Below are positions 660-33,493 of a DNA stretch of 37,461 nt, one piece after another. Position 1 is the stretch's first letter. Each line of letters starts with the position of its first letter. The notes under the pieces are model-generated. The model made no database searches, had not been told where the DNA came from, and was given only the letters and a program-made list of their open reading frames with translations. The position numbers were made by a program, and so were the translations under genes. The stretch spans positions 1 through 37,461 of the forward strand of contig NW_021835933.1 of assembly GCF_006345805.1 (NCBI RefSeq), read 5' to 3'. The stretch is from Octopus sinensis (lineage: Eukaryota).

Positions 660-2258
660 ATGATGATTTATTTCATAATCACGGTACATTAGTTTTATGC
701 AGTTGATGAAAATAGGCAATATTGTTAAAAGAAGGATCTCAAAATGGCATGCTTTAAATTCATTATTTAAAATATTTAGATAATACAAGCACATCATCCA
801 GACAAAATACTTGGAAAGGTAATTTTTATCCATGCTTTATTTCGAGGAATAACCACTACTATAGAAAATTTCCATAATTCTGAAGAGGTATAAAATTTTA
901 ATTATAAAAGAATCCTGATACTTTAGCAGAGCATCTAACCTGTAAAATTTGATTTATCATCTGATTTATTTCAGCAAGAACAATTAATAATGAAAACAAC
1001 CGAACTAAATCTAATAGTTGAATACATATTATATATTATTATTAGAAAAACTATTATTTTGCTATTATACGAACTGGGCGAAATACAGGCCAGGAGGATT
1101 CGAATTCAATGATAACGATCTCGCAAACCTCTGTACACATATAATATACGCATTTTGCAAAATTGATGCAAATAATCTCACTCTTGTTTCAAGTGATCCA
1201 AAGTCGGATTTGCCTGGAGGTAAATTTGTTGCATACATATTAGGTAAATATAACGATTATCACCGAATTACTTCTCTTAAACTTTTGAATCCTAGTTTGA
1301 AAGTCTTGCTTTCTGTTGGAGGGTTTCACAAAATGTTAAATGAATTTGCTTTTGTATCAAGCAACGAATCCAATGCAGAGAAATTTGCAAAAAATATCAA
1401 AATATTTTTAAAGAAATATAATTTTGACGGATTTGACATTAATTGGGAATATCCTTTAGATAAAAAAGAGGCATATACTCGACTGTTAAAAGCCGTGAAC
1501 AAAGAGTTTCGGAAAGACTTAACAACCTATATTTTGACCGCAGCTGTTTCAGTCGGAATGTATACGGTTCAAAAATCCTATGAGATAAAAGAAATTTCAA
1601 AGTTAAATATTCACATTTTCACAATCAGATACCTTGATTATATCAATTTGATGACTTATCACTTTTACGGAATTTCGTCAAACACTGTTGGCCATCTTAC
1701 TGGTTTATATGGAATAAGTGATGCTGATAAATTAAACATTGTATTCAGTTCAAATAAACACAAAATTTACAGGATTATGTTATTAGGTATTGGTCAAAAA
1801 ACGGTGCGCCAATTTCAAAAATGCTAATTGGATCTCCTAGCTACGGACATGGATTCAGAACTGCAACAAAAAATCCAAAACTTGGGGACAAAACCATCGA
1901 AGAATTTCCCGCAGGACCGATAACAAAAAATTCAGGAGTGCTAGCATACATTGAGGCCATCAATTCTAAGTAATTTTTAGTATTGTAAAAACAATTTTAC
2001 TGAGATGTGGGATGATAGGCAGAAGACATCATATGGAGTCAAAGATTACTATTGGTTTGGATACGAAAGTACGAGAAGTATTAAAGAAAAAGTTATTTAC
2101 TTTTTTTCACTCCGTAGGCAAAATATGTGAAAGATAAGGGACTAGCAGGAATGTTTGTGTGGACTTTGGATTATGACGACGTTAATGGAAACGAATGCAG
2201 TCAGGGAAAAAATCCCTTGATATCGCAAATGAAGGAATCCTTAACCATCGAAAAGTAG
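660..2258 (+). CDS. Secreted GH18 chitinase-like protein, 12 exons; catalytic motif variant DGFDINWE
   Basis: Exons 660-683, 716-746, 780-818, 847-887, 911-941, 975-1016, 1046-1219, 1244-1601, 1629-1740, 1773-1955, 1981-2091, 2118-2258 splice in frame (introns 23-33 nt). Protein: hydrophobic N-terminus MMIYFIITAILLKEG, N/T/S-rich spacer, then GH18 motifs FCYYTNW, LCTHIIYAF, KVLLSVGG, FDGFDINWEYP, YLDYINLMTYHF, GLAGMFVWTLDYDD; TAG stop at 2256-2258. The model needs GC donors at 747 and 1956. Confidence 0.9.
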
Positions 2259-3701
2259 AAACATATGCTAAATTATTTAGATCGGATATCACCCGTAAAA
2301 ATTTACAACAACGAATGAGTTCATTGACACTACTTCATTATTACATACTAATCAAAATAGTTTTAGAGTTCTAATAATTAACTATTGGTTCGTATGAATT
2401 TCTTGGTTATTAATAATAAAACAATTTTTTAAATTTCTTTAATAAAAACTTTTATGAAAAAACCATCAGTGAATAAAGTATGAATTCAAGATTTATGAAT
2501 GTTATTTAATAAATAAAACTTATTTTTATGTTCAATAATGTGCCTCAATCAAATTTTAAGAAAAAAATATTTGTAGATTGAATATTAAAAAATATATGAA
2601 AATGGTTTTTTACAATCTATTACTTGAGTCTTAAAAATTCAAAAATAAAAAAAGATCAAAAGATTTCCTGAGTGATCCTGAGTTCAATTCAGCCAGGTTA
2701 AAAAATTAAATTATAATTTTTTTCAAGAAAAAAATCGATTTATAGCGAATCCAATTTTTTGTCTGGCACTATGAATCCTTTCATCTCTTTTTACTTGGAC
2801 GTAACTCAGCAGAACCAATCATTTTTAATCAAATGTCCGATAATTTCTCTTTTCTGTTTTACACAATAAAATTTTTTCTTTCCCAAATTCAATAATAATC
2901 ATTTATGTCTAAAATCCTATTTTTAAGAAATGACGACATCTGCATACGAATCTTAAGTTTTTATAGTGACTAAATAGACTATTTCTGATTCAAAAATTTA
3001 TTCATCTTGCAAAATCCCTCAAAATTCCTTGAAAAGCATGTTAGATCCAATCGAAGGATTATTGACATTAAGCACAACAGCAATGCTGCCTTCAAAATTA
3101 TTTCCATACGATGAATGCTCCTTTTTTGTCTTTATTGTTACTTTATTGATTTTTTGTTTCATTTTTAATCAACCGTATTTTTGCTATCATCTGATCAGTG
3201 TTTTTATTACTTTTTAAAATTTTCACGCTGAAAAAATTACAATAGGTGTTAAGAATGACACTTTCACTATATAAATTTATACCTTTTCTTCATTCCTGTT
3301 TCCTGTCCAAAAATTATAAATACTCAAAAAATAACCCAGACCGCACAATCAATATTCAAAACATATTTGAATGCTACGGAACAAGCGTGTGCAAATCAAC
3401 AAAGTTTGTTCAAACTTCAAAAATTGTTAAACTTTGACGATTTCATATTTCAACAGAAAAAAACCTTCATTAGTTGTTCTTAATATTATAAATAAAATTA
3501 AAAGATGCGTTAGTAACGAGCTTATATCAATTTTAATTGAGTACCTTTTTGATTGAAATACTCCAGGATTTTATACTGTGTTTTTTGAGTAAAAGACTAA
3601 AATCTTTTTAATTATTTTTATTTCATAAAATCCGAAATATTATGTCGCGCCCTACGCTGGCGATTACGGTCATCTTTATAGTTGACAGTGTGACCTACAT
3701 A

Positions 3702-4654
3702 TTGTGATGGCAACTAAGTTCATGTCGTTTTTTAAATCTACATGAATTAAATAAAAAATAAGAACTAAAAACTATTTAATCAATAATGTATTCTCCATTT
3801 GTGTCAATCACTTTTTCCAGCGTTCAAAAAGTTTTTCAATACCTTCTCAGTAAAAATTTTTTGTTTTTGACTCCAAAAATCCGTCTAACCAAGCTTTTAA
3901 TTCTGCATCGTTGTTGAACAAAATCCACGCATAGCATTTGAAAGTTACCTAAAAAAGTGAAAATCTGTTGGTGCCAGATCGGGGGATTATAGCGGGTGTG
4001 GCTGTAATTCCCAGCCGTGTGTTTGAATAGCTTCCTTGGTAATTTTTGCGATATGAGGGCGGACATTGTCATGCAATAAAAGGATATTGTGTTGTCGATT
4101 AGGTCGCTTTTCTTGAATAGCCATTTTGATTGTTTCCATTTGTTGAACATAGAGTACGGCGTTCATAGTTTGGTTTTTTTCCAGCAATTCGTAATAAATA
4201 AATCCCTCCCAGTCCAACCATAAACAAAGCATCGTTTTACGTGGGTGAACATCTTGTTTCACGCTTGCTGTCCTCCTTTTATTGGGACCAAGCCATTCTT
4301 TATATTGATATACAGACACCATTTTTCATCGCTAGTAACTATTGAATAAAGAAATTGTACATTTTTCTTGTGAGTTAAGTGATGACGAGCAAGCAAGTAA
4401 AATTTTGGCTCGTTAATTTGTGTTATTATCGCTAAAACCATGGTGAACCTACACTCCACATTTTTGGACTTTTCCCATTAGGTAAAGATGCTTCTCTATA
4501 CACGTATGAAAACAATTAATCCTTTCTGCCAATTTTCTTGTTGTTTGGCGTGAATCTTCATGCAGAAGTTGGTTTAACTGTCCTTCATCAATTTAAGTTG
4601 GGCGACCAACTCAATAAATTTATAAAAACGGCATGAACTTAGTTGCCAACCCAA
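3702..4654 (-). mobile_element. Internally deleted mariner (DD34D-type) DNA transposon
   Basis: Imperfect ~30 bp TIRs (ttgtgatggcaactaagttcatgtcg at 3702; cggcatgaacttagttgccaacccaa ending 4654) with TA on both sides. Frameshifted transposase fragments carry IVTSDEKW, HPRKTMLCLWLDWEGFIYYELL, LLHDNVRPH and (Y)SPDLAPTDFH; the N-terminal HTH region is missing. Confidence 0.92.
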
Positions 4655-5322
4655 TATTTTGACATTCAAATAAAAAAACTCAACCCTCTCTATAGTGAAC
4701 ATGCCATATTTACAAGTAAGATGTAGTACAAATCCAAATTATTTTTTTAGATTTTATTTTTTAAACTCTCAATGATTTTAAAATTCTGAATTTTGGTCAC
4801 ATCTCATATCGGAACGGCTCAATCATCTTATTCTCTTCTTCCTTTTTAGTAACCACTGAAATAAAAAATGCCGTTTTTTTGCGTGCTGATCAGGTAGTTG
4901 GAAAATTACTTGAAAATTTCTTCTGCAATAGCAGTGACGCAAACTCGTTTACTATTTTAGGAGAAAAAGTATTTCTTGAGTTTTTGTATATCTTGTTTTA
5001 CTTTGCTCTGAATTTTAGGATATTCTTAAAAAGAAGAAGGAAAAATGAGTTCCACCGTTTTTAGCCAGAAGACGGAGGAACCAAAAGATTGCAATAATTT
5101 TCGGCGTTTGTTTAACAAGGCTTTTTATTAAACAATCCTAGTGCTATTATTGCAATAATTGTGAACAAGTTAAATTATAATTTTATAATATTTAAAAATT
5201 ATGTATTAAAAAATGAGAATCACAAATGGAATACCTAAATTCAATATAAATCTGTACTTGTTAATTTAATAAAATGATAATTTATTTAATATTTACGGTT
5301 ATTAGTTTTCATTATTTTTAAA

Positions 5323-7473
5323 CTCTCCGGCCGAGTCATATAAAGGACATGATTTCCCGATTGACTATGGAGACTGGAATCCGCCTGATCAAGTGTATTA
5401 CCAAGCTTGTCGAACGGATTGTCAATGCTGAGATTTCAGGCTTTGCAAGGGATCTACTTTTCTGTTCACACCTTATTGCTTTCCGAAAGAACGATGGAGG
5501 AGTCCGCCCCATTGCAGTCGGTAATGTCTTCCGGAGGCTGGCATGCAAAATTGCAGCTCGAAGAGTCTGTCCCCGTGTTGCCGCTGAATTATCTCCAGTC
5601 CAACTGGGAGTTGGTGTTTCCAACGGATGTGAAGCTGCTGTCCACGCGACAAGAGCTTTTTTTCACCTGACACAAGACATTCCCCAAATTCCTTTGCGGT
5701 GAAGCTGGATATCTCAAACGCGTTCAACAGTCTGAGAAGGGACTGTATGCTGGAATCGTGCTCGCAGCGTACCCCAGAGATCATGAGTCTGGCTCACCTT
5801 GCTTACGGGTCCGAAAGTTCGCTTGTCTTTGACAAACACATTGTCCGTTCACGGACTGGAGTCCAACAAGGTGACCCTCTTGGGCCCTTACTATTCGCTC
5901 TGTCAATCGACGAGGTGGCTCGTAATGTAAAGACACCTCTCAACCTTTGGTACCTTGACGATGCCACTATTGGTGGCCCTGTTGATGTCGTCTGGATGAG
6001 TTATATAAAATTGTTCCTGCCCTGGCAAAAATGGGGCTGATAATCAACACCAAAAAAACTGAGATCATAAATATCTCAGTCCCAATTCAAGACTTTGGCT
6101 TAGTAATGGAAAAGATTTCAGAAATCTTGCCAGACACAAAACAAACACGCCTCAACGATGTTTATTTTCTTGGGTGTCCTTCGGAGAGTCCGAAGTGCAA
6201 AACCACCTCAGAGCTAAGAGTGTCGAAATGTCCCGTTTTACTGAACGCCTCTCTCTACTCGACTCCCACACGGCCTTTTTCCTCCTCAAAAATTGCATCC
6301 ACGTGCCCAAACTGTTATATTTATTGAGATGCTCGCCCTGCTTTATACAAGATGAAATATTGCATTCTATCGATGATACGTTAAGATTGTGTGCCGAGTG
6401 GATCCTAAATGTCCGTTTCGATAATGATGGGTGGACCCAGTGTAAACTACCTCTTAATTCTGGCGGAGCTGGCCTAAGATCCGCCCTGGACCTTGCCCTC
6501 CCAGCTTTCCTGTCCTCTCACTCATCCTGCCGAAGGCTATCCTTGGAGATTCTACATAAATCCCCCGAATCTTCTTTGGACAGGCCTTTTGAAGATGGAT
6601 GTATGCTGTGGAAGGAATCAGGATTAAAATTCCCGATCCAAACATCACTCCAACAGAGCTGGGACAAATTACGCTGCGAATTCACCGCAGACAACCTGGC
6701 AATGAGGCTCGACCAGCACCGCCTCGCCTGCTTACGCTCTGCAGCTGTGCCACACAGTGGGTCATGGCTGAATGCTATGCCAATTGCTTGCCTCGGAACA
6801 TTATTAGAGGATGACTGCATGCGTATCGGTACTGCACTGAGACTCGGACTTGACATCTGCGAACAACATCGTTGTAGATGTGGAAAAATGGTTGACGTCA
6901 AAGGTGTACACCCACTCTCTTGCAGACGAAGTGCTGGCCGAGCTCCTCGGCACTCCGCTATTAACAATGTTATCTTAAGAGCTCTTGAGTCGGCGGGCTT
7001 CCCCTCGATCCTAGAGCCAGTGGGCTTAGATCGTGGAGATGGGAAAAGACCCGATGGAATGACCACTTTTCCTACTCCTGTGGAAAATCGTTGGTTTGGG
7101 ATTCAACGTGTGTTGACACCCATTCCAAAACTAATATGATCTCTTCTGCTGTTTCTCCAGGTTCTGCAGCAGATGCTGCAGAGCAAAGAAAATTGCCAAA
7201 TACGCAAATCTTGGACAACGGTACCGCTTCGTACCTATCGCTGTGGAGACTTCTGGGGTAACCGGCCCTCTTACGACTTCTTTCATCAGAGAAGTCGGAG
7301 GAAAAGTTGCTAGGCGACGTGGGGAGCCTCGAGAAGTGTCATGGTTATTCCAACAAATTGGAATAGCTGTCGTTCGCGGCAATGCACACTCCATCATGCG
7401 TGCAACCGCAAGTGCCTTTTAATCATTGACTAACATTAAAAACTATAATTAAAAAAAAAAAAAAAAAAAAAAA
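5323..7473 (+). mobile_element. 5'-truncated CRE-clade non-LTR retrotransposon (RT + CCHC knuckle + restriction-like endonuclease) with poly(A)
   Basis: Frameshifted ORFs give VRPIAVGNVFRRL, QLGVG, KLDISNAFN, GVQQGDPLGPLLF, WYLDD (RT), CRCG..H..SC (zinc knuckle) and GKRPDG (RLE). A 23-nt A tail lies at 7451-7473, and ttagttttcatta is repeated at 5302-5314 and 7490-7502 (probable TSD). Confidence 0.92.
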
Positions 7474-7610
7474 GCATAAATTAATGGCGTTAGTTTTCAT
7501 TAATTTATTGAAAATAGACAATTTTATTAAAAGAAGCCTTACAACACGGTATAGTATAAATTATATAAAAGATCGAACATGCACATCAATTGGAAATTGG
7601 AAATACTCCA

Positions 7611-7998
7611 AACCTTCCCCCCCAAAAAAAATTAAAAAAAAATTTTCTGCATTTTGGTCAAAATGAACAACTACGATGTCCTCGACTTACATGATGAGGT
7701 CCTTAAAACCTTCCCCCCCAAAAAAAATTAAAAAAAAATTTTCTGCATTTTGGTTAAAATGAACAACTACGATGTCCTCGACTTACATGATGAGGTCCTT
7801 AAAACCTTCCCTCCAAAAAAAATTAAAAAAAAATTTTCTGCATTTTGGTTAAAATGAACAACTACGATGTCCTCGACTTACATGATGAGGTCCTTAAAAC
7901 CTTCCCCCTAAAAAAAAATTAAAAAAAAAATTTCTGCATTTTGGTTAAAATGAACAACGCGAATGTCCTCGAAATTCATGATGAGGTCCATTAAAACC
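7611..7998. repeat. Tandem repeat, ~96 bp unit x4
   Basis: Unit aaccttcccc...ttctgcattttggttaaaatgaacaactacgatgtcctcgacttacatgatgaggtcctt starts at 7611, 7707, 7803 and 7898, with a partial fifth start at 7995. Confidence 0.95.
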
Positions 7999-8211
7999 TT
8001 CCAGGCAAAAATCTCACGTATTAAGAATATCCTTGATGAAAACGACAGCGAGAATATTAACAATGATGAACTCCCAATTATTTGCGATAAAGAAATTCAA
8101 TTCATCCTATGTTTTTCTCTTTAAAATTAAATGCATATATCATTATCGACCAAGAATCAAATTAAAGCTATTATCATATTTGACTTTGACAGAATGTGCA
8201 ATCACAGATTG

Positions 8212-8415: not shown

Positions 8416-8459
8416 AGCGCAATCTGAAGAATTTGCGTAAAAATATTCACTATTTAGTT

Positions 8460-8692: not shown

Positions 8693-10949
8693 GAAAAAAC
8701 GGTCAGCTTAAGGTAATTAATTAAATCTTTTTTGTGTGTCGCTTTTTTGGCTGCTGCTACTCTGCCTGCCGCATCTCCGCCAGTGGTTTGTCTAATCAAG
8801 GTCACCAAGCTAAATCTCCGGACTATAAAGGCTCTTAAGCATTATCTTAACTGGCTGTTAAAAAAATTAGACAGGTTGTTGCCGTGGTGGCAGAGATTTT
8901 TTTTGTTTATACTATTTTACAAATTTTTAAAATTTTTTTTTGTTTTTTTTATTTCTTTTGTTTTTAAATTATTTATTTTTATTTGTTTTTTTTATTTTTT
9001 TGTTATTTTCTAAAAATTCAACCGGATTGAATTTTTAAACTCCTTAGATCCCTCTGGAATGCCGAATCATCTTTTAAAGTTAAAGATTGGTGTTCCAGTG
9101 GTTTTATTACGAAATCTTGCGCCACCTAAATTATGCAACGGAACGAGGTTAGTTATCAAAAATTTGATGGCTAACGTAATAGAGGCGACGATATTAACAG
9201 GTAAGTATAGAGGTGAGGATGTTTATATTCCACCAATTCCGATAATTTCTGATGAATTACCATTTAGATTTAAAAGGCTGCAATTCCCTTTGAGGATGAG
9301 TTTTGCAATGACAATAAACAAGGCCCAGGGACAGTCATTAAAGGTAGTTGGGTTATTTTTAGAGAGTGAGTGTTTTTCACATGGACAGCTGTATGTGGGA
9401 TGCTCGAGGGTAGGCAGAAGAGAAAATTTATTCATATATGCCAAGGAAGGACGGACGACAAACATCGTTTATCAACAGGCGATAGAATAGGGTTACATTA
9501 AACCAGGTAGTTTTATACATCTACATAAACTTATAGTTGTTTGATGAAACAGGCCCTCCGCAGGAGCTAGGTCGCGGTGAGCGAAGCGAGCTGCCGAGCT
9601 AGTATTATATACGCATTCTGCAACATTGATACAGATAATCTTACTCCTATTTCAAGCGACCCTTGGTCTGATTTGCCTGGGGGTATATTTGTTAAATACA
9701 TATTAGGTAAATATAACGATTATCATCGAATCACTTCTCTTAAACTTTTGAATCCCCAATTAAAAGTCTTGCTTTCTGTTGGAGGGTATCACAGATTGTT
9801 AAATGAATTTTCACTTGTATCAAGCAGTGAAACCAATGCAGAGATATTTGCGAAAAACACAAAAAACTTTTTAAATAAATACAATTTTGACGGATTTGAC
9901 ATTGACTGGGAATACCCTCAAAATCAAAAACAGGCGTACACCCGACTGTTAAAAGCAATGAACATCGAATTTCGAAAAGGCTCAAAAACATATATGTTGA
10001 CCGCAGCTGTCTCAGCGGGAATTTCCACAATTCAGACATCATATGAAATAAAGGAAATATCCAAGTTAAACATTCTCATTCTCACAATTAGATATCTTGA
10101 TTACATCAATTTGATGACTTACGATTTCTATGGACAGTTTTCAACTACTGTTGGTCATCATGCCGGATTATATGGAATTAGTGATACCGACACATCCAAC
10201 ATTGTACTGATTTTAAATAAACTTTAATTTTACAGAATTATATTGTCAAATATTGGGCCAAACATGGTGCACCAATGTCAAAAATGCTTATTGGATTGCC
10301 CATCTACGGACAAGGATTCCAAACAGCTACTAAAAATCCAAAAATTGGGGACAGGATCATTGGTGGAACGCCTGCAGGGCCGATAACAAAACAATCAGGA
10401 ATTTTAGCATACATCGAAGTACGTTTTATTCTAATAAAAAATTAGTATTGTAAATTAGGTTATACTGAAGTGTGGGATGATAAGCAAAAGGTGTCGCATG
10501 GAGTAAAAGACTACTATTGGTTGGGATACGAAAGCATTAAAAGTGTTAAAGAAAAGGTAAATAAATTTTTTTATTTTGTAGGCAAGATATGTAAACGACA
10601 ACGGACTAGCAGGAATGTTTTTGTGGACTTTAGATTATGCCGACACTAATGGAAATCAATGTGGTCAGGGAAATGATCCCCTAGTATATGAAATGAAGAA
10701 ATCATTGAACATTATTGTGAAAAGGTTGAATCATATATTAGATAATAAAGTCACGATAGCAGCAAGAAAAAATTGGTAAAACGAATTCGTCCATTGACTC
10801 TACTATATTATTACATATTCATTAATATCGTGTTAGAGATCCTTTAATTAACTATTGGTTCGGATAATTTTTTTTGGTTACTAATAATATAATACTGTTT
10901 GTGGACATTTTTAATAACGAATTGTTACTATTTCATGTATCAAAACATG

Positions 10950-12593: not shown

Positions 12594-14142
12594 TTAGTCT
12601 GAAAAAATATTTTCAAACAATGGGCAGTATAGGCCTTCTTTTATCACAGTGATCGGCTTTAATAAATCTGAAATTCCTTTTGTATATTTCTGAAATTTTT
12701 GTATCTATTATAATTACTTGCGCATACGAAATTCCATTATTTTTTTCTATCGCATCAGCATTTTTCCCTATCCACACATATACGCCACTTCTGTGGTTTA
12801 TAATAAACACATCCTTAAAAATTGATATTTAACTTACATTTGAATCAAGTAATGATCGATTTAAAACATCATATTCAATATTGATAAACTCTAGTTTACC
12901 ATTTTCGTTTCTCACTCTTAAAACTTCATTATTAGATTGTTCAAAATCTATAAACTCCGAACTATCATCTGTGAGATTATCTCTAAATATTTGCTATATT
13001 TTAATTTATTTTAGAAACATCTTTTTGTTCTTCATCAAATACAGTGACTTGGCAGTTATTTCTCGTGTTCGATAAGTTATTTGCAAAAATCATCGACTAT
13101 AAATTATTCCGAATTGATTTTACTTGTGCTTTTTCTTGAGGACTACAATTTAAACCATACCAAATATATATCTCGTCCCCAATATCAAGAATAAATGCGT
13201 CGTCGGAATTAAGACATTTTTTACTGGCAGGAACCTAAAATGGTAAGATGAATTATAAATTATCCGGATAACTTGAATTGCCTGAATATTCTTCTTTATA
13301 CCAAAAATATGAATTAATCGTGGCATATAATGTTGAGGGACCACATGACGGAAACCTGAATCGACTCCTCCTGATAAAACTCTAAGAATTTAAATTCCAA
13401 AATAATTTTCAACACGAATTCATCGAAATAACTTTTCATAAGCTCAGTCTCGTGTCCTTCAATTTCTCGATGCTGAACAGCTTTTCCGCCTAGAAAAGTA
13501 TCTAGTTCTACTGTTTTATATGCAGCAGTGCCATATTCATCCTTTAAATAAAACATTTATTCTAATCAAACTGCTGTGCTTTCAATCCCAATCCAAAAAT
13601 GAATATCGTAAGATAAGTCTTCGCTTAACTCTGTTGCTTTATAAGCCTAAAGTTGATATTTGACGCGAATCACATTTAGAATGATGTAAGAATCTCCATT
13701 AAAAAAATTTCCATAATCTTTGATTTCAAGACTTATAACCTCAAAATTCTCGAAATTGATAATTCTGTAATACCACAATTCTCCAGATGTAAAGTCCTTC
13801 AGATTCACAATTTTTCCAAGCTTTTTCCAGCTGCGCAGATGTTTCTAATTTGAATGAAGCTTTTATTACAATACTTTTAATCTGTCTTTCAACGTCAGTT
13901 CCGAATAAAGCTAAATTTGTTTCTTGAATATTAATTTTATGTGGTTTCCTTAGTTTGACTTTCTATAAAAAATATATAACCTACTTTTTGACATTTGAAG
14001 AATTCGAAGCGATTATTCGCAATTTATCTTTTTCGCTTAGCGATAATAAATGTAAAAACCACAATACAATAACGATTAGGCGTATAGAGAATTGAATAGC
14101 CAAAAGTTTTAAAATATTTAGAGAAGCGAGACACATTGGCAT
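12594..14142 (-). CDS. Gelsolin-family (three-domain severin/fragmin-like) actin-severing protein
   Basis: From 13962 to TAA at 12596-12594 the exons splice via ten 24-38 nt GT-AG introns to [21 protein letters not shown]...[94 protein letters not shown]. The first exon is ambiguous (ATG 13994 or 14142, see findings). Confidence 0.9.
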
Positions 14143-15621: not shown

Positions 15622-16600
15622 TTATCTTTCAAGAATTACAGGAAAAATAATAAACAGAATGAACAAGCAGATGAAAGGTAAAACCCCCCTTGAATTACGA
15701 GTTTCTTCATTCTGATCACAAAAAGAATCCTTCCCTTCTTTTTTTCTCATTATTTTACGATATTTATTAATTGAATCTTCAGAAGATGTCTTTTTCAATT
15801 CTTCCAAAACCAGATCAACGTCCTATTAATTGAATTACTTTAAAAATATTCACCGAAACTTCTATCGATTCCTCAACATGTTTCCAAACTTTAAAACATT
15901 CTTCCCACTCTTGTTTTATATTGTTTTTCCTATAAAATAATGTTAAGTACTCAAAGGAACTTTCTAAGAACTTTGGCAAGTTTTTTAGATATAGAAATGA
16001 TGATCAGTCGGAATATTGTACTTTCGCTATATCTTAGCTGCCCTTGGTCAACTAATTGGATGTCTGATTTCATTTTATCCAACAATAAAAAAAGTTTGTC
16101 GTTTATAGTCTAAAATAAGTATATTAATATCAACGTCTATGTTATTTAATGCACATCCGAGATCTCTACTTGTTGTAAAAGACTGTGACAACTGTTTGAA
16201 TATTTCATAGACAAAGCATTGAAATTCCACCAGAAAAGTAAAAAACGGAATTAATCTTAAGGAAATTGAAAAATTTTCGATTAGATTTATACACAATTCA
16301 AGCCATTTTCCTATCAAGTCTGCCGAGAAAATACAAAATTAAAAGAAACTAACCAAAAATCAAAATATTATTTTCATCTTTTTGAGAGTCGATTATATCG
16401 TACAAAATCTGCATATTTTTTGCACATCTATTTAACCAGTCAAACTAAAAATTAAAATGATTTTTAACATATTTGTGATCAGCAGCTTCTCCTTCCTCTG
16501 CAGATATTTCTTGTTTTATTTCATTTGAAAGTAAACTGTATTGAGATTCTAATTCAAAGATAGAATAATCAGTTTCAGATCCGTTCGAATCCTGGATCAT
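15622..16600 (-). CDS. Unidentified multi-exon protein with C-terminal transmembrane segment
   Basis: ATG at 16600 (MIQDSNGSETDYSIFELESQY...). Mini-introns such as gttaaaaatcattttaatttttag (24 nt) and gtacttaacattattttatag (21 nt) link open exons ending ...GVLPFICLFILFIIFPVILER*. One internal junction near 15960-16020 could not be resolved cleanly. Confidence 0.65.
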
Positions 16601-17285
16601 AAAATAATAAACAATAATGATAACTGGAAAACTGATATTTGAAAAAATGACTTGGTCAATTTCAGTAAACAGGTCAACTATTAATGTGGTAGTTAAGGAA
16701 AATGGTAATTTTTTAACTTTATTTTTTGACTAGATCTTTAAATATTGAAAATATTACTTCAGATGATTTGATTTCACCGAAAGTTACACGTTCTATAAAT
16801 TTAAAAATAAAACAGACTTGTTGGTTTTGTTGGTTTATGAAAAAATAATTTATATTTTTCATTTATTTGGTTGAATAAGGTCGATATTTTATCATATTGG
16901 GCATTTTTTATAAATATTATTTTGCTTAGTTGCTTAAGGTTTCTAATTTTGTGTTTTATCGTCACGTTCTCCTCGTTATTCTTAAATTAATATAGTTACA
17001 TACTTTTTCATCTTGTTTACAAGCTTCTAATATAATAAGTTGACATTTTATTAAATTATACTCACATAAAAATTCTAAAAAAGTCGAGTTTTTCTATAGA
17101 AATTAAAAAATGAGACGTCAAACCGACATAGTTTATTAAGACGCACTAAGAGTATTATATAGATGAGAAATATCGCATAATTTACTTCTTTGCTTCCGGA
17201 TTGATAAAGTTAAATTTTTAATAAAATAATCAAAATAAATATTTATTCGATAAAAATAAGGAATAGAAAATATAAATAAGTAATA

Positions 17286-22401: not shown

Positions 22402-23019
22402 TTAAATTATTCTGGGAAATTTGTCGATCTCTTCTTGTGAGTAGTCTTCGAATTTTTTGTAGATTGGCATCACCTGCGGAAGTTTGTGAGAAATATTTTG
22501 TTTTATATGATCAGGAATATTCTATTATAAAGTAAATGTGAACAATTCAACCTTTCCAGGAAATATATGGAGTCTTGCTAAAGCATCGTGCCTCAGTAAA
22601 GATCCACGAATATGCGTCTTTATAGCATTGCGGATAATCCATGTTGAATCCTGTTGGTGTCGTTCATAAGCCATGACTTTTTTGGAAATAGTCCTAAACC
22701 TGAAATAAAAAAATTAATATTTCACCTGGAAAATTCTCGATAGTATAAATTCCGCCAATTATTCCCTTCCATAGCTATATATCGGCTATTTATTACTACC
22801 ACGTGGTCACCACAGTCATCTAAAATGAGACATCCTTGCTTATACTAAGAGGGTGGTATATTGGCTTGTGTTTTCCTTCTAAGTAAGGAGCAATTTTTAA
22901 GGCAGAATAAAAAGGACTTTGATGTTGGGCATCGTAAAGCCACCACACACGTGCAAACGTGAGCCATTGCTGTAGTAGAAAATTTGTAAACTTACTTCAA
23001 CACGACGAAGGGAAGACAT
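22402..23019 (-). CDS. MRPL13: Mitochondrial ribosomal protein L13 (uL13m), 5 exons
   Basis: Introns 22995-22970, 22845-22820, 22725-22700 (26 nt each) and 22551-22522 (30 nt) give [70 protein letters not shown], matching the animal MRPL13 N- and C-terminal signatures. Confidence 0.95.
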
Positions 23020-23140: not shown

Positions 23141-24215
23141 ATGAGAAACTGTGGGTTGCGTACGGCAAAACTACTAGCTCTCCACAACGGAATCGACAAA
23201 TGTGGTAAGTTGTATTTAAAATAAAAAATTTTGATTAACTAATTTTTGTTTATTATTAGCTTTAAATATTGTAATAATAAATATAATGTTAAAGCTAGTT
23301 TTTGACTGTTCGAAGTGGATTCCCAATGAAAGTGTTTGGAAGAAGTGCATTTCTTCAATTGATTACATCGAAGCAGTGAAATTTGAAACTTTGCGACATA
23401 AAAACGCAACAAAAAATTCTTTAGTTGAAAATAAAATAATATAAAATTAGATTGGTCGACTATTAATACGATACTCAGTGACTCAATTGTTGGGCATACG
23501 CTGGAATTGTATAGATCTCAGACGTAGTTCCTATAATCGACCTTATATCACTGTTCAAGCCAGTTGGATTTCAATTTGGCTCACGATGATGATCTTGTAA
23601 TTTGTGTGGCCTCGAAATACCATTTTATTGGTGTAGACATTCTATATATAATAATAGTAAAAATGTATGCTTTAAATATAAAAAGGAAAAGATACAATTG
23701 AAGACTACACATTACTTGTTCAGAAGAAAACAAGTTCGAAGAGTTTTAATTATATTTTTGGCTCTTCTGAAGGAAGACTGTCCAGATTCTATCGAATTTG
23801 GGTGTTCGGTTGTTTATTGATAACTAGGTCCTCAGTGAGAGTTATATAAAGGCAATTGGAAGGGGGCTGGGATTCAGTATTAACCGTCTTGATTTCAACA
23901 TTTCGGAAGAAGATGTTTGGCCATGTTTTTCAACAACTGTTTCTGTTGATGGAGTTTTACAGAATAATGTTACATTTGAAGAGCTTAAATTAGGCAACAA
24001 CGACCATCTAGCTGCAATCTGTCTTATTTCTTCAAATATAAATGTACTAAATTTGCATTTTATTTTTATAGGTCTGTGAAGATTCGTGTGTTATAAATTC
24101 AGTTTTTCAATATTTGACTATTGATCAACTTTTGGCAAATTCAACCAAAGTGTTGCAAGTGGATAAAAAAATTTCCCAATGTTGGTTGGATTTTATATCT
24201 AAAAAAGATTCTTAA
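23141..24215 (+). CDS. AASDHPPT: Sfp-type 4'-phosphopantetheinyl transferase, copy 1
   Basis: Spliced product LVFDCSKWIP..IGRLLIR..FNLAHDDDLV..IGVDI..RFYRIWVLSESYIKAIGRGLGF..FEELKL follows the AASDHPPT motif order. Start is ATG 23286, or 23141 via a 55-nt intron. As assembled there is a -1 at ~23549 and a +2 at ~23651 relative to copy 2, likely sequencing errors. Confidence 0.85.
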
Positions 24216-25640: not shown

Positions 25641-25696
25641 AAAAATTTAATGAATTTTACATTAAAAATAATATTTTAATAATTAAACATTTTGTT

Positions 25697-25980
25697 TTTT
25701 GTTTTTTTTTTTTTTTACTTAATATATGTATTTTTTTAACAAAAGGAAGAAAATATATGTTAATTAAGGTTGTTTAAGAGCAGAAAGGATAGCGTGGCTA
25801 TTACCCCTGACAACGGTTGTTGAAAGGCGTTGAAACAGCCATTCGGTCTCCTTTCTATCTTTCGTCCGAACCGAGATCAGGGATCCAAGTTTCCTAATGA
25901 AAGCGATTGATTCCGGACCAAAGACTCCGGATGACTCCACAATGATCGGTTGCACTATGAACCTGTCCTTGAGCTCTGAA
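25697..25980 (-). mobile_element. Short CRE-like 3' fragment with A-rich tail, copy 1
   Basis: QPIIVESSGVFG..EWLFQRLSTTVVRGNSHAIL*, a T-run on the plus strand at ~25697-25717, and aacattttgtt on both sides (25686, 26012). Confidence 0.8.
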
Positions 25981-26140
25981 TATTTTAATTTTTTAAAATT
26001 TTAATTTTTTTAACATTTTGTTGTGTAAATTTTTAATTTAGTAAAATTAATGAATGTAATTATTAAGCGTCAATTTTATTCGGACTGTGACAGGACACAT
26101 AAGAAACAAATACAAAAAAGTTTAAAAAAACTCCCAAAAG

Positions 26141-26327
26141 GGAATGCGCCCAAACCGGAAATACTGCAATACCGGGAGGACGCGTGGTAGGGAGGAAGCA
26201 AGCTTCGCAACACATACCAAGGCACAAAATAAGCATTATATCTTGCCCCGTGTAAGGGCGTCCCAGATATAAAGCTGGAAAGAACAGATACTACACTTTG
26301 ATCTTAGCCAAAAGGCCGAGAAGCGAC
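26141..26327 (-). ncRNA. U2: U2 spliceosomal snRNA, full length, copy 1
   Basis: Minus strand reads GTCGCTTCTCGGCCTTTTGGCTAAGATCAAAGTGTAGTATCTGTTCTTTCCAG..., with an Sm-like site (ATTTTG) and stem-loop IV loop ATTGCAGTA in stem ccgg/ccgg; ~187 nt. Confidence 0.97.
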
Positions 26328-26519
26328 AAAAAGAATGTGATTTTCGGTGGGCAACAATTATTCTAACAACAACAAACAGGGTTGTTTGTTTTTGTGCTCA
26401 GTAATAATTATTATAAATTTAAATTTTATAATTATTAATTATATCTATCTTACAAGAGTATAACAAAATTACATTATTATTTTTTGTCTGCGATTACTTT
26501 TCTAATCTGTATTTTTGTC

Positions 26520-27050
26520 TCGTTCGATACCTAGCTTATCGAAACATGGAATCTGTTGAAAAACTTTGACTCACTACTTCGAGATCGGGCGAATATAATG
26601 CGCAGAAAAACTCTTGTCGCTGAGTGTTCGTAAAATCGTTATGTAGGACTGACTACGACATAGTTCTTTGCACCCCTCACTACGCTCCAGAATCTACAAT
26701 ACCTTTGTAAAAACCGTCTTAATTTTAAATCATCTCTATGGCCCATTTCCGATACCAACTAAATAATCTTGACTCTTCACGAAAAACAACTTTGTGTCCT
26801 AATTGAAGTACATTAGTATCAGAAAATCAAACTCATCACTCTACAGGCTCAGCAACTCGGTGCCAATCAGCCGTGACATCATAGACGGCTATGGGAGATC
26901 CTAAGAATGGATCCAACTGCTTCTGCCTACCAGGCCATGGAAAAATACTTCCTATCAGATGGACCAAAATTTCGTGGGCGATCCAAATTATACTGCTGGC
27001 CGTTCTGCAACAAAACGTAAACCCTAAACAACGATAATGACCTGGACCCG
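26520..27050 (+). mobile_element. Older RTE-like fragment, copy 1
   Basis: TWNLLKNFDSLLRDRANIMRRKTL and RRLWEILRMDPTASAYQAMEKYF..FRGR resemble the 24770-25640 family. Confidence 0.65.
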
Positions 27051-27269
27051 AAAATGCATTAATTTAACCACTAGTTACGGACATTGATTTCATGAATCTA
27101 TGCTTGAAGTAAGGTTAAATTTGTTATTTATCGAGTTTAAAAAGTAATAAAGTTTTTTTAATAAATCTAACTCAAATTATTATTTTAATAAATTGTAAGG
27201 AAATCATGTCGATTATTGCTATTCTTTATTTCTAGAACCGCTTAAAGCTAGTTTACTCGACTAATAGCT

Positions 27270-27563
27270 AGCAGCCCCAGTTGCTGAAGACTATGGATGT
27301 TGGAATTCAAACGTCGTGGGTTCGATTCCGATGGAACCAAGTTTTCAGCTGGGGTCAAGTCTTGTCAACGTTCCCCACCCGTGAGGCGACGAGTCCATCT
27401 GGCACGACACAGATGTAGAAAGGGGACCTCCCACCTTCCCCCGATCACATTTCCCGATGAAGAATCTCCATTATGCAAAAAACCCGTCCGGATTCAAATG
27501 AAGTGCGGTGAGCTACGGTAAGAGGCTGACAAATGGGAATGGGCATACCAGAAATTCCCCACC
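27270..27563 (+). mobile_element. GC-rich SINE-like element with Pol III B-box, truncated by the duplication junction
   Basis: GGTTCGATTCC at 27319-27329 lies inside an imperfect inverted repeat (ccccag..ctgaagact / agttttcagctgggg); no complete tRNA cloverleaf is visible. Confidence 0.5.
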
Positions 27564-27670
27564 AGGACTTTGATGTTGGGCATCGTAAAGCCACCACACA
27601 CGTGCAAACGTGAGCCATTGCTGTAGTAGAAAATTTGTAAACTTACTTCAACACGACGAAGGGAAGACAT
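27564..27670 (-). pseudogene. MRPL13: 5' fragment of MRPL13 created by the duplication
   Basis: Exon 1, intron 1 and the start of exon 2 (to ..YDAQHQSP) run directly into the SINE-like sequence at the junction. Confidence 0.9.
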
Positions 27671-27792
27671 AAGTGTTAATTTAAATATTTTTTAAATATT
27701 AATAATATAATTTTTTTATGCAAAAATTTGTCTTCAAAGAGAGAATTAAATAATTAAAAATAGCTGAAGGATTCTGTCTGCACTCATGCGAC

Positions 27793-28846
27793 ATGAGAAA
27801 CTGTGGGTTGCGTACGGCAAAACTACTAGCTCTCCACAACGGAATCGACAAATGTGGTAAGTTGTATTTAAAATAAAAAATTTTGATTAACTATTTTTGT
27901 TTATTATTAGCTTTAAATATTAATAATAAATATAATGTTAAAGCTAGTTTTTGACTGTTCGAAGTGGATTCCCAATGAAAGTGTTTGGAAGAAGTGCATT
28001 TCTTCAATTGATTACATCGAAGCAGTGAAATTTGAAACTTTGCGACATAAAAACGCAACAAAAAATTCTTTAGTTGAAAATAAAATAATATAAAATTAGA
28101 TTGGTCGACTATTAATACGATACTCAGTGACTCAATTGTTGGGCATACGCTGGAATTGTATAGATCTCAGACGTAGTTCCTATAATCGACCTTATATTCA
28201 CTGTTCAAGCCAGTTGGATTTCAATTTGGCTCACGATGATGATCTTGTAATTTGTGTGGCCTCGAAATACCATTTTATTGGTGTAGACATTCTATATATA
28301 AATAGTAAAAATGTATGCTTTAAATATAAAAAGGAAAAGATACAATTGAAGACTACACATTACTTGTTCAGAAGAAAACAAGTTCGAAGAGTTTTAATTA
28401 TATTTTTGGCTCTTCTGAAGGAAGACTGTCCAGATTCTATCGAATTTGGGTGTTCGGTTGTTTATTGATAACTAGGTCCTCAGTGAGAGTTATATAAAGG
28501 CTATTGGAAGGGGGTTGGGATTCAGTATTAACCGTCTTGATTTCAACATTTCGGAAGAAGATGTTTGGCCATGTTTTCAACAACTGTTTCTGTTGATGGA
28601 GTTTTACAGAATAATGTTACATTTGAAGAGCTTAAATTAGGCAACAACGACCATCTAGCTGCAATCTGTCTTATTTCTTCAAATATAAATGTACTAAATT
28701 TGCACTGTGAAGATTCTTGTGCTATAAATTCAGTTTTTCAATATTTGACTATTGATCAACTTTTGGCAAATTCAACCAAAGTGTTGCAAGTGGATAAAAA
28801 AATTTCCCAATGTTGGTTGGATTTTATATCTAAAAAAGATTCTTAA
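27793..28846 (+). CDS. AASDHPPT: Sfp-type phosphopantetheinyl transferase, copy 2
   Basis: Same as copy 1 except that the last intron's acceptor is deleted (still in frame), there is a 1-nt homopolymer frameshift at ~28575, and gt is missing at ~27921. Confidence 0.75.
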
Positions 28847-29399
28847 TAAATTATTTAAATCTGAAATAAGGGATATTTGTCGGGTTTTTCCATTGTGTTG
28901 ATTAGCTATAGACTACTTCTTACGAATATTGTATTCAAAAATAATAATTTATATGTCTAAGTTCGATTCGAAATCCCTCTGAAAGTAACTTGTGTATAAT
29001 TTTAGATAAGATAAAGTTGTATTTATTTCATGATAACAATTTTACTAATAAAAATAAAGATTGGTAGTTCTTTTAAAGAAATAGACTTTTACTATCACAA
29101 CACAGTCATCATAATCACCCGAATATGCTAATTGTTATCACATGCTTTGTATCCATAGAACTATAACAAAAATAGTTAGAGCTGAAAGTAGAATGTATTT
29201 TCATTAAGAGGAGTATCTCTTAGTGACAAATTGGAAAATGATTTACCGATAGTCATGGTTTATTAAAACCTGTAAAGAACTATTTTACGATTTTTCAAAT
29301 AAAGCAGAAATTGTGAATACTACTAAACACTCTGAGAAAACATTTCTCACTCGTTACACTCGGTCGCATAACCCGAACTGTTAATGAATATTTTTCCCC

Positions 29400-30270
29400 C
29401 AGTCATAGCGGATTCAGGGCTAGAAGATCCACAGCTGATATAATCGTGACCTACTTATCGGGGTTCTGGAAAGCTTTCTAGAGGTGGATGAAGTGATAAT
29501 GATACGGTTACTGCTTGCTAAGACAGAACTTTCTGTTCGTATTGAGTCAGTCTCCTCCAGGCGGTTTAAAACAAATGTCGGCACCCCTCAAGGAGATTCT
29601 CTCCCCCTCTGCTATTTGTAATCTATCTGGAAGCCGCCTTGAGAGATTTGAGAACTTTCTATAATGATTTTATCACCGAAAATGTATATGCGGACGATGT
29701 GGACTTTGCCTAGGACAACATAGATGATTTAATTCATCTAATAAGCAATTTCCCACGGGTGCTTAACAAATGGTTCCTGATAATTAACACTTCCAAAACT
29801 GAATTGACGGAGATAAAACAAATGGACACCAGAATTGGTGAAACATGGAAAAACGTCAACAAACTCAGCTCTCTACTTGGAGACAGTGAAGACATTTCTC
29901 GCAGAAAGATGCTTGCTACCGCGGCTCTAAGCAGAATACGTGAAAAATGGCTCCAAGCTTGGCTGATAAATCGGGCCCTCAGATCAATGCTTTATAATGC
30001 ATTCGTAAGCCTGTTCTACTATACAACTCGTCAACATGGGGGATTTCGGACACTGAACTGAAGACTATAGACTCTTCACCGTAAACAACTACGTCTCTTA
30101 CATGGAATACACTGGCCATCAAAAATTAACAATCTATTACTGTATAGACATTACGATGCTACACCGTTGTCTCAAGAAATCGTTGGAGGCGGTGGAAATT
30201 ATTAGGCAATATTTTGCGAATGGACCCCAGAACTCCGGCCAATCGGGCATGGACGATTATACAAATTAGT
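29400..30270 (+). mobile_element. RTE-like RT fragment, copy 2
   Basis: Duplicate of 24770-25640. Confidence 0.8.
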
Positions 30271-30327
30271 AAAAAAATTTAATGAATTTACATTAAAAAT
30301 AATATTTTAATAATTAAACATTTTGTT

Positions 30328-30612
30328 TTTTGTTTTTTTTTTTTTTTTACTTAATATATGTATTTTTTTACAAAAAGGAAGAAAATATATGTTAATTAAG
30401 GTTGTTTAAGAGCAGAAAGGATAGCGTGGCTATTACCCCTGACAACGGTTGTTGAAAGGCGTTGAAACAGCCATTCGGTCTCCTTTCTATCTTTCGTCCG
30501 AACCGAGATCAGGGATCCAAGTTTCCTAATGAAAGCGATTGATTCCGGACCAAAGACTCCGGATGACTCCACAATGATCGGTTGCACTATGAACCTGTCC
30601 TTGAGCTCTGAA
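30328..30612 (-). mobile_element. CRE-like 3' fragment, copy 2
   Basis: Duplicate of 25697-25980. Confidence 0.8.
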
Positions 30613-30772
30613 TATTTTAATTTTTTAAAATTTTAATTTTTTTAACATTTTGTTGTGTAAATTTTTAATTTAGTAAAATTAATGAATGTAATTATTAAGC
30701 GTCAATTTTATTCGGACTGTGACAGGACACATAAGAAACAAATACAAAAAAGTTTAAAAAAACTCCCAAAAG

Positions 30773-30960
30773 GGAATGCGCCCAAACCGGAAATACTGCA
30801 ATACCGGGAGGACGCGTGGTAGGGAGGAAGCAAGCTTCGCAACACATACCAAGGCACAAAAATAAGCATTATATCTTGCCCCGTGTAAGGGCGTCCCAGA
30901 TATAAAGCTGGAAAGAACAGATACTACACTTTGATCTTAGCCAAAAGGCCGAGAAGCGAC
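30773..30960 (-). ncRNA. U2: U2 snRNA, copy 2
   Basis: Identical to copy 1 except that the Sm site reads the canonical ATTTTTG. Confidence 0.97.
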
Positions 30961-31154
30961 AAAAAGAATGTGATTTTCGGTGGGCAACAATTATTCTAAC
31001 AACAACAAACAGGGTTGTTTGTTTTTGTGCTCAGTAATAATTATTATAAATTTAAATTTTATAATTATTAATTATATCTATCTTACAAGAGTATAACAAA
31101 ATTTACATTATTATTTTTTGTCTGCGATTACTTTTCTAATCTGTATTTTTGTCT

Positions 31155-31690
31155 CGTTCGATACCTAGCTTATCGAAACATGGAAACTGTTGAAAAACTT
31201 TGACTCACTACTTCGAGATCGGGCGAATATAATGCGCAGAAAAACTCTTGTCGCTGAGTGTTCGTAAAATCGTTATGTAGGACTGACTACGACATAGTTC
31301 TTTGCACCCCTCACTACGCTCCAGAATCTACAATACCTTTGTAAAAACCGTCTTAATGTTTAAATCATCTCTATGGCCCATTTCCGATACCTAACTAAAT
31401 AATCTTGACTCTTTTCACGAAAAACAACTTTGTGTCCTAATTGAAGTACATTAGTATCAGAAAATCAAAACTCATCACTCTACAGGCTCAGCAACTCGGT
31501 GCCAATCAGCCGTGACATCATAGACGGCTATGGGAGATCCTAAGAATGGATCCAACTGCTTCTGCCTACCAGGCCATGGAAAAATACTTCCTATCAGATG
31601 GACCAAAATTTCGTGGGCGATCCAAATTATACTGCTGGCCGTTCTGCAACAAAACGTAAACCCTAAACAACGATAATGACCTGGACCCGA
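31155..31690 (+). mobile_element. Older RTE-like fragment, copy 2
   Basis: Duplicate of 26520-27050. Confidence 0.65.
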
Positions 31691-31908
31691 AAATGCATTA
31701 ATTTAACCACTAGTTACGACATTGATTTCATGAATCTATGCTTGAAGTAAGGTTAAATTTGTTATTTATCGAGTTTAAAAAGTAATAAAGTTTTTTTAAT
31801 AAATCTAACTCAAATTATTATTTTAATAAATTGTAAGGAAATCATGTCGATTATTGCTATTCTTTATTTCTAGAACCGCTTAAAGCTAGTTTACTCGACT
31901 AATAGCTA

Positions 31909-32290
31909 GCAGCCCCAGTTGCTGAAGACTATGGATGTTGGAATTCAAACGTCGTGGGTTCGATTCCGATGGAACCAAGTTTTCAGCTGGGGTCAAGTCT
32001 TGTCAACGTTCCCCACCCGTGAGGCGACGAGTCCATCTGGCACGACACAGATGTAGAAAGGGGACCTCCCACCTTCCCCCGATCACATTACCGATGAAGA
32101 ATCTCCATTATGCAAAAAACCCGTCCGGATTCAAATGAAGTGCGGTGAGCTACGGTAAGAGGCTGACAAATGGGAACTGGGCATACCAGAAATTCCCCAC
32201 CTCTCTTTGGAGACGGACGGCTGTAATGAAGATTTGGTGGCTAATGTTGATCGGCACACGCGATCCCTTCGTTCCTTGCTCCTTCATTTG
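31909..32290 (+). mobile_element. SINE-like GC-rich element, untruncated copy
   Basis: B-box GGTTCGATTCC at 31957-31967; the GC-rich body continues past the duplication end to ~32290. Confidence 0.5.
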
Positions 32291-32386
32291 ATTAGTTAAA
32301 AATAATTCAGGTTTCACTTTTTGTCAAATAACAATTCATTAATCCTTAAATTTAAATTGAATAATTTTTAAATAGGTAAAATCAAT

Positions 32387-33493
32387 TCAAGATCTCCAGG
32401 AAGAGTTAAACCGAGAGGATAAATCTTTAAATTCATTTCTCTGAAAAATTATACAATCCCACAACTTTATTTTCCAGATCAATCAAAAGCGGGTGATTTG
32501 GGTCATTTTCATGCAACAAAGTCATATAATGAGCATAAACCTGAACATAAATCAATACAAATTAACCTCCTCTGAACCACCAATCCTGTCTACTATTGCT
32601 ATAATGTTGGCCAAAACAGTCCCATCTGAACTATCCTGTAAATATAGTACAAATAATGCGTCTTACTAGTCTAAATGCCTCCAAAAGTAAAGAATATGCC
32701 TCGTCAAGTCGATTTTGTGAAATCAAGGCCACGGCTTGACTGTTCAAAAGAACCGATGATGCTCCAAAACGGTCAATCAGTTCTTTACAAGCCTCAAAAG
32801 CATCGTTTGTCCCCTTTAAGGAATTCTGGGAACAGATTACCGCAAACTTAAACTTACTGAGTATAAATTATATTGAATTGAGGCTAATTGAGAAATAACC
32901 GAGTCTTCGTCTAACATCATTATATTTTTGAGCTGATTTTTTGCTAAATCAGGTCTGTTGAGAGCCAAAAGAAGTTGTATTCTCATAGAAAGGCACTCTA
33001 AGTTATTTTCTTCAGTGGAAATTGACATTAAGCCAGATTTATAGTCCTATGAATATTTTTATCAATAAATTATATATCATGGTTGAATTAATACCTTTTG
33101 ATCTGAAAATATAATAGAAGCCATTATTTGTGCAATAGGACTCATCTTTTCTCCGTTTTGTATTCTCTGTGTAAGATTTTGAACTATTTCGTAACTATTT
33201 TAGCTAAATTCAACATTAATATATACCGAGCAGTATTATTACCACTACTAAAATATTTAGCAGCCATTTTTATTTCTTCTATATCTGGATGAAATTGCTC
33301 GCTATTTATGATGAGGCTGTATTTCTTTTGTGCGAGATAAACTCTGTTAATTAATATTTGTGATTCTGATAATTGCTTAAATGTTAAAATATGTATTTTA
33401 TACTTTTGACTTTAATGCCTCTGATAAGACTTGATTATAATGTCCAGTATGAAAAAAATTCTCCATTTGTATTAATGAATGAGAATAAGCCAT
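32387..33493 (-). CDS. COPE: Coatomer subunit epsilon
   Basis: Spliced via ~25-35 nt introns: MAYSHSLIQMENFFHTGHYNQV..RVYLAQKKY..LECLSMRIQLLLALNRPDLAKNQLKNIMMLDEDSVISQLA..LLNSQAVALISQNR..LANII..PNHPLL..*, matching the epsilon-COP TPR motif order. Confidence 0.93.

Follow-up and report, generated by a model that had tools for sequence, protein, structure and literature searches.

Why should a scaffold filed under Octopus sinensis carry animal genes whose introns are mostly shorter than 30 nt? The question is raised by NW_021835933.1 of RefSeq assembly GCF_006345805.1, an unplaced scaffold (C12404 in our numbering) analysed here over its whole length of 37,461 bp and called the window; the assembly searched comprises 2.72 Gb in 13,516 contigs, with proteins labelled Octopus sinensis. 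A preliminary description of the window, made from its letters, had proposed ultra-short introns throughout the genes of an animal of dicyemid type. We found 53 introns in seven distinct protein genes, namely two chitinase-like genes, a gelsolin-like gene, MRPL13, AASDHPPT (present in two copies), the epsilon-COP gene COPE and an orphan (Table 1), and we read the window, with a probability of about 0.9, as nuclear DNA of a dicyemid mesozoan (Dicyema or a close relative) that was co-assembled with, and annotated as, octopus. The ultra-short introns themselves are already known as a dicyemid hallmark, and in this respect the window is a rediscovery (Ogino 2010; Lu 2019; Zverkov 2019; Hadjez 2026).

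Introns were placed with a protein-to-DNA spliced aligner (BLOSUM62) that is free to open GT/GC..AG introns of 12-150 nt in every phase, without preference for length, using as references Dicyema japonicum CLP1, four gelsolin-like proteins, pig uL13m, human AASDHPPT and mammalian epsilon-COP. Spliced alignment to homologues set 37 of the 53, all of them 24-48 nt long; the other 16 (the six 5' introns of chitinase gene 1, gelsolin intron 1 and the nine of the orphan) were placed by open-frame continuity. Lengths range from 22 to 48 nt, with a median of 27 and a mean of 28.1; 52 of the 53 do not exceed 38 nt, 37 (70%) are shorter than 30 nt, and the longest real intron is the 48-nt one of COPE (33094-33047). 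The proposal of ultra-short introns throughout stands. A single 55-nt intron in that proposal (23631-23685) does not: it compensates for indels of 1-2 nt in AASDHPPT copy 1, and the corresponding intron of copy 2 has 29 nt.

Once the introns are removed, the conserved proteins are restored with no gap at the junctions. Among the 42 introns of the six complete models, 36 disrupt the reading if retained (28 by frameshift, 8 by in-frame stops), and the remaining 6 are silent, i.e. in frame and free of stops; five of these six are missing from homologues, and silent introns surface as the spurious peptides KFVAYILG and LNIHIFTIR in RefSeq model P0001. Splicing raises the match of the chitinase to Pfam GH18 from 199 bits over positions 3-259 of 317 (RefSeq model) to 274 bits over 3-317. 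It also turns two stretches of COPE similarity (82.8 bits) into a single one, residues 7-289 against 19-304 of epsilon-COP (5a1v_Q; 123.9 bits, E = 9.4e-35). The four separate gelsolin references (bivalve, gastropod, echinoderm and one further gelsolin-like protein) return the identical ten introns. Phase 0 accounts for 30 of the 42 introns (71%), including all seven of COPE. The 5,955 nt of modelled exons contain no in-frame TAA, TAG or TGA. The preliminary description had taken TAA and TAG as stops; the standard reading of stops is upheld, with TAA terminating six genes and TGA one, but TAG was not seen as a terminator.

We read the mini-introns as ordinary U2-type GT-AG, rarely GC-AG, spliceosomal introns, with 51 GT-AG pairs and two GC-AG (1956-1980 and 747-779; ~4% GC donors), the former having a GT homologue in the paralogous chitinase (10419-10445). 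Donor positions +3 to +6 carry at most 0.13 bit each, with A or T at +3 and no preference for G at +5. The acceptor reads (T/C)AG followed by A or G, preceded by a weak T excess at -5 to -7 and by A/C at -8 to -9. Intron interiors are 82-83% A+T (81% in the 37 homology-backed introns) as against 67% in exons, and whole introns have a GC content of 23% against 33%. No branch site emerged: the best score for complementarity to the GUAGUA of U2 (bulged A) averages 2.45, against 2.35 +/- 0.21 in shuffled introns (p = 0.32, n = 52), and a 4-mer enrichment scan of the introns for a branch motif found nothing beyond A/T runs. The earlier observations of little donor consensus beyond GT and of no evident branch motif are thus borne out, with the two GC donors as an addition, and the window agrees with the reduced 5' and 3' splice motifs reported for D. 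japonicum (PMC13644364).

Both U2 small nuclear RNA (snRNA) genes of the window are full-length Rfam matches. Relative to the Rfam consensus, both carry an extra A between GAUCAA and GUGUAGUA, the rest of the 5' half being invariant. A search of the assembly for U1 snRNA returned octopus chromosomal copies plus one degenerate copy on C9998, in microsatellite-rich DNA. Judging from the sequence, the introns are probably removed in vivo in this organism. Recognition would be by intron definition across the very short A+T-rich segment, the ends, their spacing and the composition would carry most of the information for splicing, and any A lying 8-12 nt upstream of the AG could act as the branch point.

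Whose DNA is it? A hand-spliced chitinase (1045-2260) used as a query finds as its best match P0001, 'acidic mammalian chitinase-like [Octopus sinensis]', followed by other small-scaffold proteins with the '[Octopus sinensis]' label. Beyond this assembly, the nearest relative is D. japonicum chitinase-like protein 1 (CLP1, P0004), at 51% identity and the sole named dicyemid protein found; other named proteins outside the assembly reach at most 39% identity, and genuine octopod chitinases ~35%. A maximum-likelihood tree was built from the two window chitinases, two '[Octopus sinensis]' small-scaffold proteins, CLP1, and octopod and other animal chitinases. The window, small-scaffold and CLP1 sequences form one clade on a long branch with 100/100 support, and the chitinases of O. 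bimaculoides, O. vulgaris and Argonauta are placed outside it, among those of other animals. This grouping by tree concerns one gene family, the chitinases, and it upholds the dicyemid-type assignment proposed earlier. The best gelsolin matches are spiralian and other animal three-domain gelsolin-like proteins, and spliced MRPL13 aligns to pig uL13m without a gap over residues 1-169, including the C-terminal part (E = 1.8e-42), in line with the earlier view of these as metazoan genes.

Octopus renal sacs are the habitat of dicyemids, and octopus is their obligate host. DNA of such a renal-sac parasite would have entered the Octopus sinensis genome during assembly, in the form of a scaffold left unplaced. 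D. japonicum was obtained for genome sequencing from Octopus sinensis (PMC6736024), and since the record bears the name of this very host, we take the window to be a contaminant scaffold.

The assembly itself allows a direct comparison of architectures, as a second, different MRPL13 is found on the chromosome-scale contig C8. There, over 50 kb separate the exons at ~79,339,5xx and 79,288,7xx, which have GTAAGT donors and long pyrimidine tracts on their flanks; the window counterpart is a gene of 0.6 kb whose introns have 26-30 nt, only GT for a donor and a weak T-rich run before the YAG. Nevertheless, three of the four window introns (1, 2 and 4) agree in codon and phase with those of the octopus C8 gene, MRPL13 being the gene examined for shared positions. 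Because the C8 gene differs yet shares intron positions, we conclude that the assembly holds the orthologues of two organisms and that the window mini-introns are shrunken ancestral introns; ancestral metazoan positions would have been kept while lengths shrank to ~22-48 nt. The two genes further resemble each other in their GT-AG ends; the C8 gene is canonical U2-type, and the window U2 snRNA, with its GUAGUA, is canonical as well.

The likeness to described dicyemids is close. In Dicyema sp. the median intron is 27 bp, and about two thirds are shorter than 30 bp (Zverkov et al. 2019, PMC6543705), matching the window in both respects (37/53 for the latter). Its ~4-12 introns per gene at positions conserved with other animals, its chitinase-like protein family and its host O. 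sinensis are dicyemid traits too, and the words 'conservative exon/intron structure' stand in the title of Ogino et al. (2010, Gene 449:70), as cited in PMC6543705. The D. japonicum genome has a mean intron of 38 bp, 36.7% GC and 49% repeats (Lu et al. 2019, PMC6736024), and the window is likewise A+T-rich and repeat-rich: at 33.3% GC, its compact genes are interspersed with transposable-element fragments (a mariner transposase, a pogo-type DDE, hAT, a Pif1/Helitron-like piece and reverse-transcriptase fragments) and with a multi-copy retroelement. Unlike the published genome, the window is filed as octopus, and the one D. japonicum protein compared is only ~50% identical to any assembly locus. 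Among the animals surveyed, such introns are restricted to myxobolids and D. japonicum (Hadjez et al. 2026, PMC13644364).

Several points weigh against the dicyemid assignment, or against the introns on which it draws. Sixteen introns, placed by open-frame continuity only, are to be taken as tentative, and transcript-level support is indirect, consisting of the D. japonicum CLP1 protein, which is without the intron segments. We take CLP1 to be cDNA-derived (work of Ogino et al.). It is also the one named dicyemid protein available for comparison, and at ~50% identity it is probably a paralogue or a distant orthologue. No copy near-identical to it was found anywhere in the assembly, where no locus exceeds ~54% identity, but chitinases form a large family, and part of the contaminant genome may be missing. 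Frameshifts in both AASDHPPT copies, together with the truncation of chitinase 2, mean that assembly errors or pseudogenes are present. Finally, an unplaced scaffold is, as far as sequence can tell, compatible with dicyemid DNA integrated in the octopus genome.

Such horizontal integration, or octopus genes with unusually short introns, would make the scaffold genuine octopus nuclear DNA, as the labels of the record and of its RefSeq proteins have it. We consider this very improbable, because octopus has its own MRPL13 on C8, with widely spaced exons and canonical GTAAGT/polypyrimidine signals, and true octopod chitinases lie elsewhere in the tree; gene architecture and orthology do not agree with the chromosomes of the host, and every gene of the scaffold is built in the dicyemid manner. 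The young retroelement family described below also speaks against it, occurring only on non-chromosomal scaffolds among the copies scored. Still less probable is a source in some other tiny-intron organism, be it a myxozoan, a ciliate with standard stops or another protist. Myxobolid myxozoans do have median introns of 22-27 bp, and very short introns are covered for ciliates in the same work (PMC13644364), the latter resembling those of the window in size range, minimal internal signals and high A+T. However, myxobolids belong to a cnidarian lineage in which the trait is convergent, and ciliates are protists, several with reassigned stops, while the window holds metazoan genes that end in TAA or TGA and share intron positions with a mollusc. 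The D. japonicum protein is the sister of the chitinases (100/100), gelsolin and MRPL13 have the animal affinities given above, and the animal sampled is an octopus, a cephalopod that dicyemids require as their host.

Least probable of the three is that the introns are artefacts of long-read indels or pseudogene decay, with GT..AG segments chosen post hoc. Such errors do occur: between the tandem copies, 21 indels are spread over 4.65 kb, and indels of this kind gave the one false 55-nt intron; in degenerate chitinase paralogues the aligner invents 'introns' of 12-20 nt or 57 nt, a warning about indels in general. Yet the 37 homology-backed segments all fall within 24-48 nt, when anything in the range of 12-150 nt was permitted; each has GT or GC at its start and AG at its end, and the interiors are richer in A+T than the exons. 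They recur at identical positions in chitinase paralogues on seven scaffolds and in octopus MRPL13, and they are missing from the D. japonicum CLP1 protein. We therefore retain the reading of the window as dicyemid nuclear DNA with genuine ultra-short introns.

Table 1. Genes, introns and the tandem duplication mapped in the window (introns given as position, with length in nt in brackets).
Feature	Position	Strand	Introns	Remarks
Chitinase-like gene 1 (GH18)	660..2374	+		~448 aa; hydrophobic N-terminus; hydrophobic C-terminal tail; stop TAA
Chitinase 1, tentative 5' introns		+	684-715 (32), 747-779 (33, GC-AG), 819-846 (28), 888-910 (23), 942-974 (33), 1017-1045 (29)	open frame
Chitinase 1, homology-backed introns		+	1220-1243 (24), 1602-1628 (27), 1741-1772 (32), 1956-1980 (25, GC-AG), 2092-2117 (26), 2255-2280 (26)	alignment to CLP1
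Chitinase-like gene 2	9592..10847	+	9683-9706 (24), 10065-10091 (27), 10204-10235 (32), 10419-10445 (27), 10557-10581 (25), 10725-10750 (26)	paralogue ~78% identical to gene 1; 5' end cut off by Pif1/Helitron-like fragment; stop TAA; introns by CLP1 alignment
Three-domain gelsolin-like gene	12594..13994	-		eleven introns; PDB gelsolin and villin matches; Pfam Gelsolin in three stretches; stop TAA
Gelsolin introns 1-6		-	13984-13963 (22), 13874-13845 (30), 13773-13749 (25), 13673-13647 (27), 13571-13542 (30), 13413-13382 (32)	intron 1 by ATG and open frame only
Gelsolin introns 7-11		-	13272-13235 (38), 13123-13097 (27), 13018-12994 (25), 12837-12814 (24), 12717-12690 (28)	
Orphan gene	15622..17093	-		at least 408 aa; C-terminal hydrophobic tail anchor; stop TAA; nine introns by open frame only
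Orphan introns 1-5		-	17003-16981 (23), 16817-16793 (25), 16757-16730 (28), 16624-16592 (33), 16468-16445 (24)	
Orphan introns 6-9		-	16353-16320 (34), 16134-16110 (25), 15971-15950 (22), 15853-15823 (31)	
MRPL13 (mitochondrial uL13m)	22402..23019	-	22995-22970 (26), 22845-22820 (26), 22725-22700 (26), 22551-22522 (30)	169 aa; stop TAA; introns by spliced alignment, intron 1 by reading the DNA
Tandem duplication, 4.65-kb unit	22913-27563 and 27564-32201			window blastn against itself; 98.9% identical; 21 gap openings
AASDHPPT copy 1	23286..24215	+	23424-23450 (27), ~23657-23685 (29), 23802-23827 (26), 24044-24071 (28)	second intron by homology with copy 2; stop TAA
U2 snRNA copy 1	26139..26327	-		Rfam RF00004, 141 bits; full length; GUAGUA and Sm site intact
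AASDHPPT copy 2	27935..28846	+	28073-28099 (27), 28305-28333 (29), 28450-28475 (26)	
U2 snRNA copy 2	30771..30960	-		Rfam RF00004, 148 bits; full length, canonical; GUAGUA and Sm site intact
Epsilon-COP (COPE)	32387..33493	-	33403-33376 (28), 33195-33167 (29), 33094-33047 (48), 32857-32826 (32), 32666-32636 (31), 32566-32541 (26), 32465-32441 (25)	295 aa; seven introns, all phase 0; stop TGA

The chitinase family gives the densest record of intron positions. The six introns aligned to CLP1 stand at identical positions in genes 1 and 2 (24, 27, 32, 25/27, 26/25 and 26/26 nt); exon lengths of the pair differ by 0, 6 or 9 nt and introns by 2 and 1 nt. The same introns of 23-32 nt, at the same positions, are found in paralogues at six other scaffold loci (C9535, C12462 twice, C12471, C2705 and C12604). 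With its six 5' introns spliced, chitinase 1 has an unbroken frame of 448 aa from the ATG at 660, and among these introns 942-974 has been conserved in the C9535 paralogue. Another, 1017-1045, is missing from the closest paralogue (L029, on C9535), where a difference of 41 nt is made up of its 29 nt and four codons; it is possibly a recent gain or loss between paralogues. Directly upstream of chitinase 2, in place of its 5' exons, lies a fragment of a Pif1/Helitron-like helicase (9014-9487, plus strand). Chitinase 2 may be a truncated pseudogene.

For COPE, a first alignment had given a 44-nt intron at 33184-33141; it was replaced by the 29-nt intron at 33195-33167, which yields a better end-to-end match. 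The orphan has no homologue in Pfam, in 5.8 billion proteins or in the rest of the assembly. Its 5' end was not found, and it adjoins a transposable element at 17250-18020. An ab initio search for open-frame chains with introns of up to 70 nt over-fits A+T-rich non-coding DNA and serves as a lead only; the chain was retained as a shuffle test, with intron lengths limited to 20-40 nt, and here the orphan scores 1017, against 252 +/- 74 (maximum 537) in 200 dinucleotide shuffles.

The preliminary description had concluded from an intact MRPL13 that mitochondrial translation is retained, which is reasonable and unsurprising, dicyemid mitochondrial genomes having been described (bioRxiv 10.1101/282285). 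Fragments similar to MRPL13 exon 4, with 16 residues identical or nearly so and without the rest of the gene, occur at C12603:47744-47866 and C8999:149972-150082. Each unit of the 4.65-kb tandem duplication holds the 5' end of MRPL13 (the 5'-only duplicate lying at ~27564-27670), AASDHPPT, a retroelement fragment and a U2 gene; the duplication may be either real or an assembly artefact. Neither AASDHPPT copy is open end to end, and the two differ by exon indels of 1-2 nt. Copy 1 lacks a base at 23548 and has a surplus AT at 23651-23652, which break its frame. In copy 2 the frame is lost at 28574, and the fourth intron is missing its 3' end owing to a 16-nt deletion. This indel (24058-24073 in copy 1) takes the 3' splice site with it, and the 12 nt left are readable in frame. 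Pfam AASDHPPT_N and ACPS are both found on the composite protein.

How much more of this DNA does the assembly hold? A retroelement at 5300-7420 (plus strand), with an RVT_1 domain and ~44% GC, richer than the window, is repeated at 97-100% identity on 33 or more other scaffolds; the copies that were scored all lie outside C1-C30. Several of the scaffolds that bear it also carry dicyemid-type chitinases, and the element appears to be a young family marking out a megabase-scale dicyemid fraction of the octopus assembly. Tandem repeats of ~96 nt (copies 93-95% identical) occupy 7610-8002, just past the A-rich 3' end of the retroelement. The young retroelement or the chitinase family of the window recurs on at least 33 other scaffolds, some of them over 0.5-1.3 Mb. 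Perhaps, though we would put this at somewhat below even odds, the RefSeq assembly hides a megabase-scale partial genome of a dicyemid other than the sequenced D. japonicum strain or species. If so, a second dicyemid genome would be had for free, and with it a between-species test of how introns of 22-30 nt evolve without donor or branch consensus, covering intron gain or loss between paralogues (as at 1017-1045), the ~4% usage of GC-AG and the 71% phase-0 bias.

No report of dicyemid contamination of the O. sinensis assembly was found in the literature searched. The ultra-short introns being known, the practical news is this megabase-scale contamination of an octopus assembly, together with its mis-spliced RefSeq models. 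Read as parasite proteins, the '[Octopus sinensis]' models P0001, P0002, P0003 and P0006 either translate in-frame mini-introns as peptide or halt at an intron that was not recognised, and gene models on dicyemid scaffolds bear the name of the host in NCBI and UniProt. Such mislabelled entries can mislead comparative genomics of cephalopods, claims of horizontal gene transfer and counts of gene families; once recognised, the contaminant scaffolds are usable as dicyemid genome data. As to splicing, the window illustrates what is already known for dicyemids, that in animals the spliceosome is able to excise introns of 22-30 nt with little beyond GT...YAG to guide it, while U2 stays canonical.

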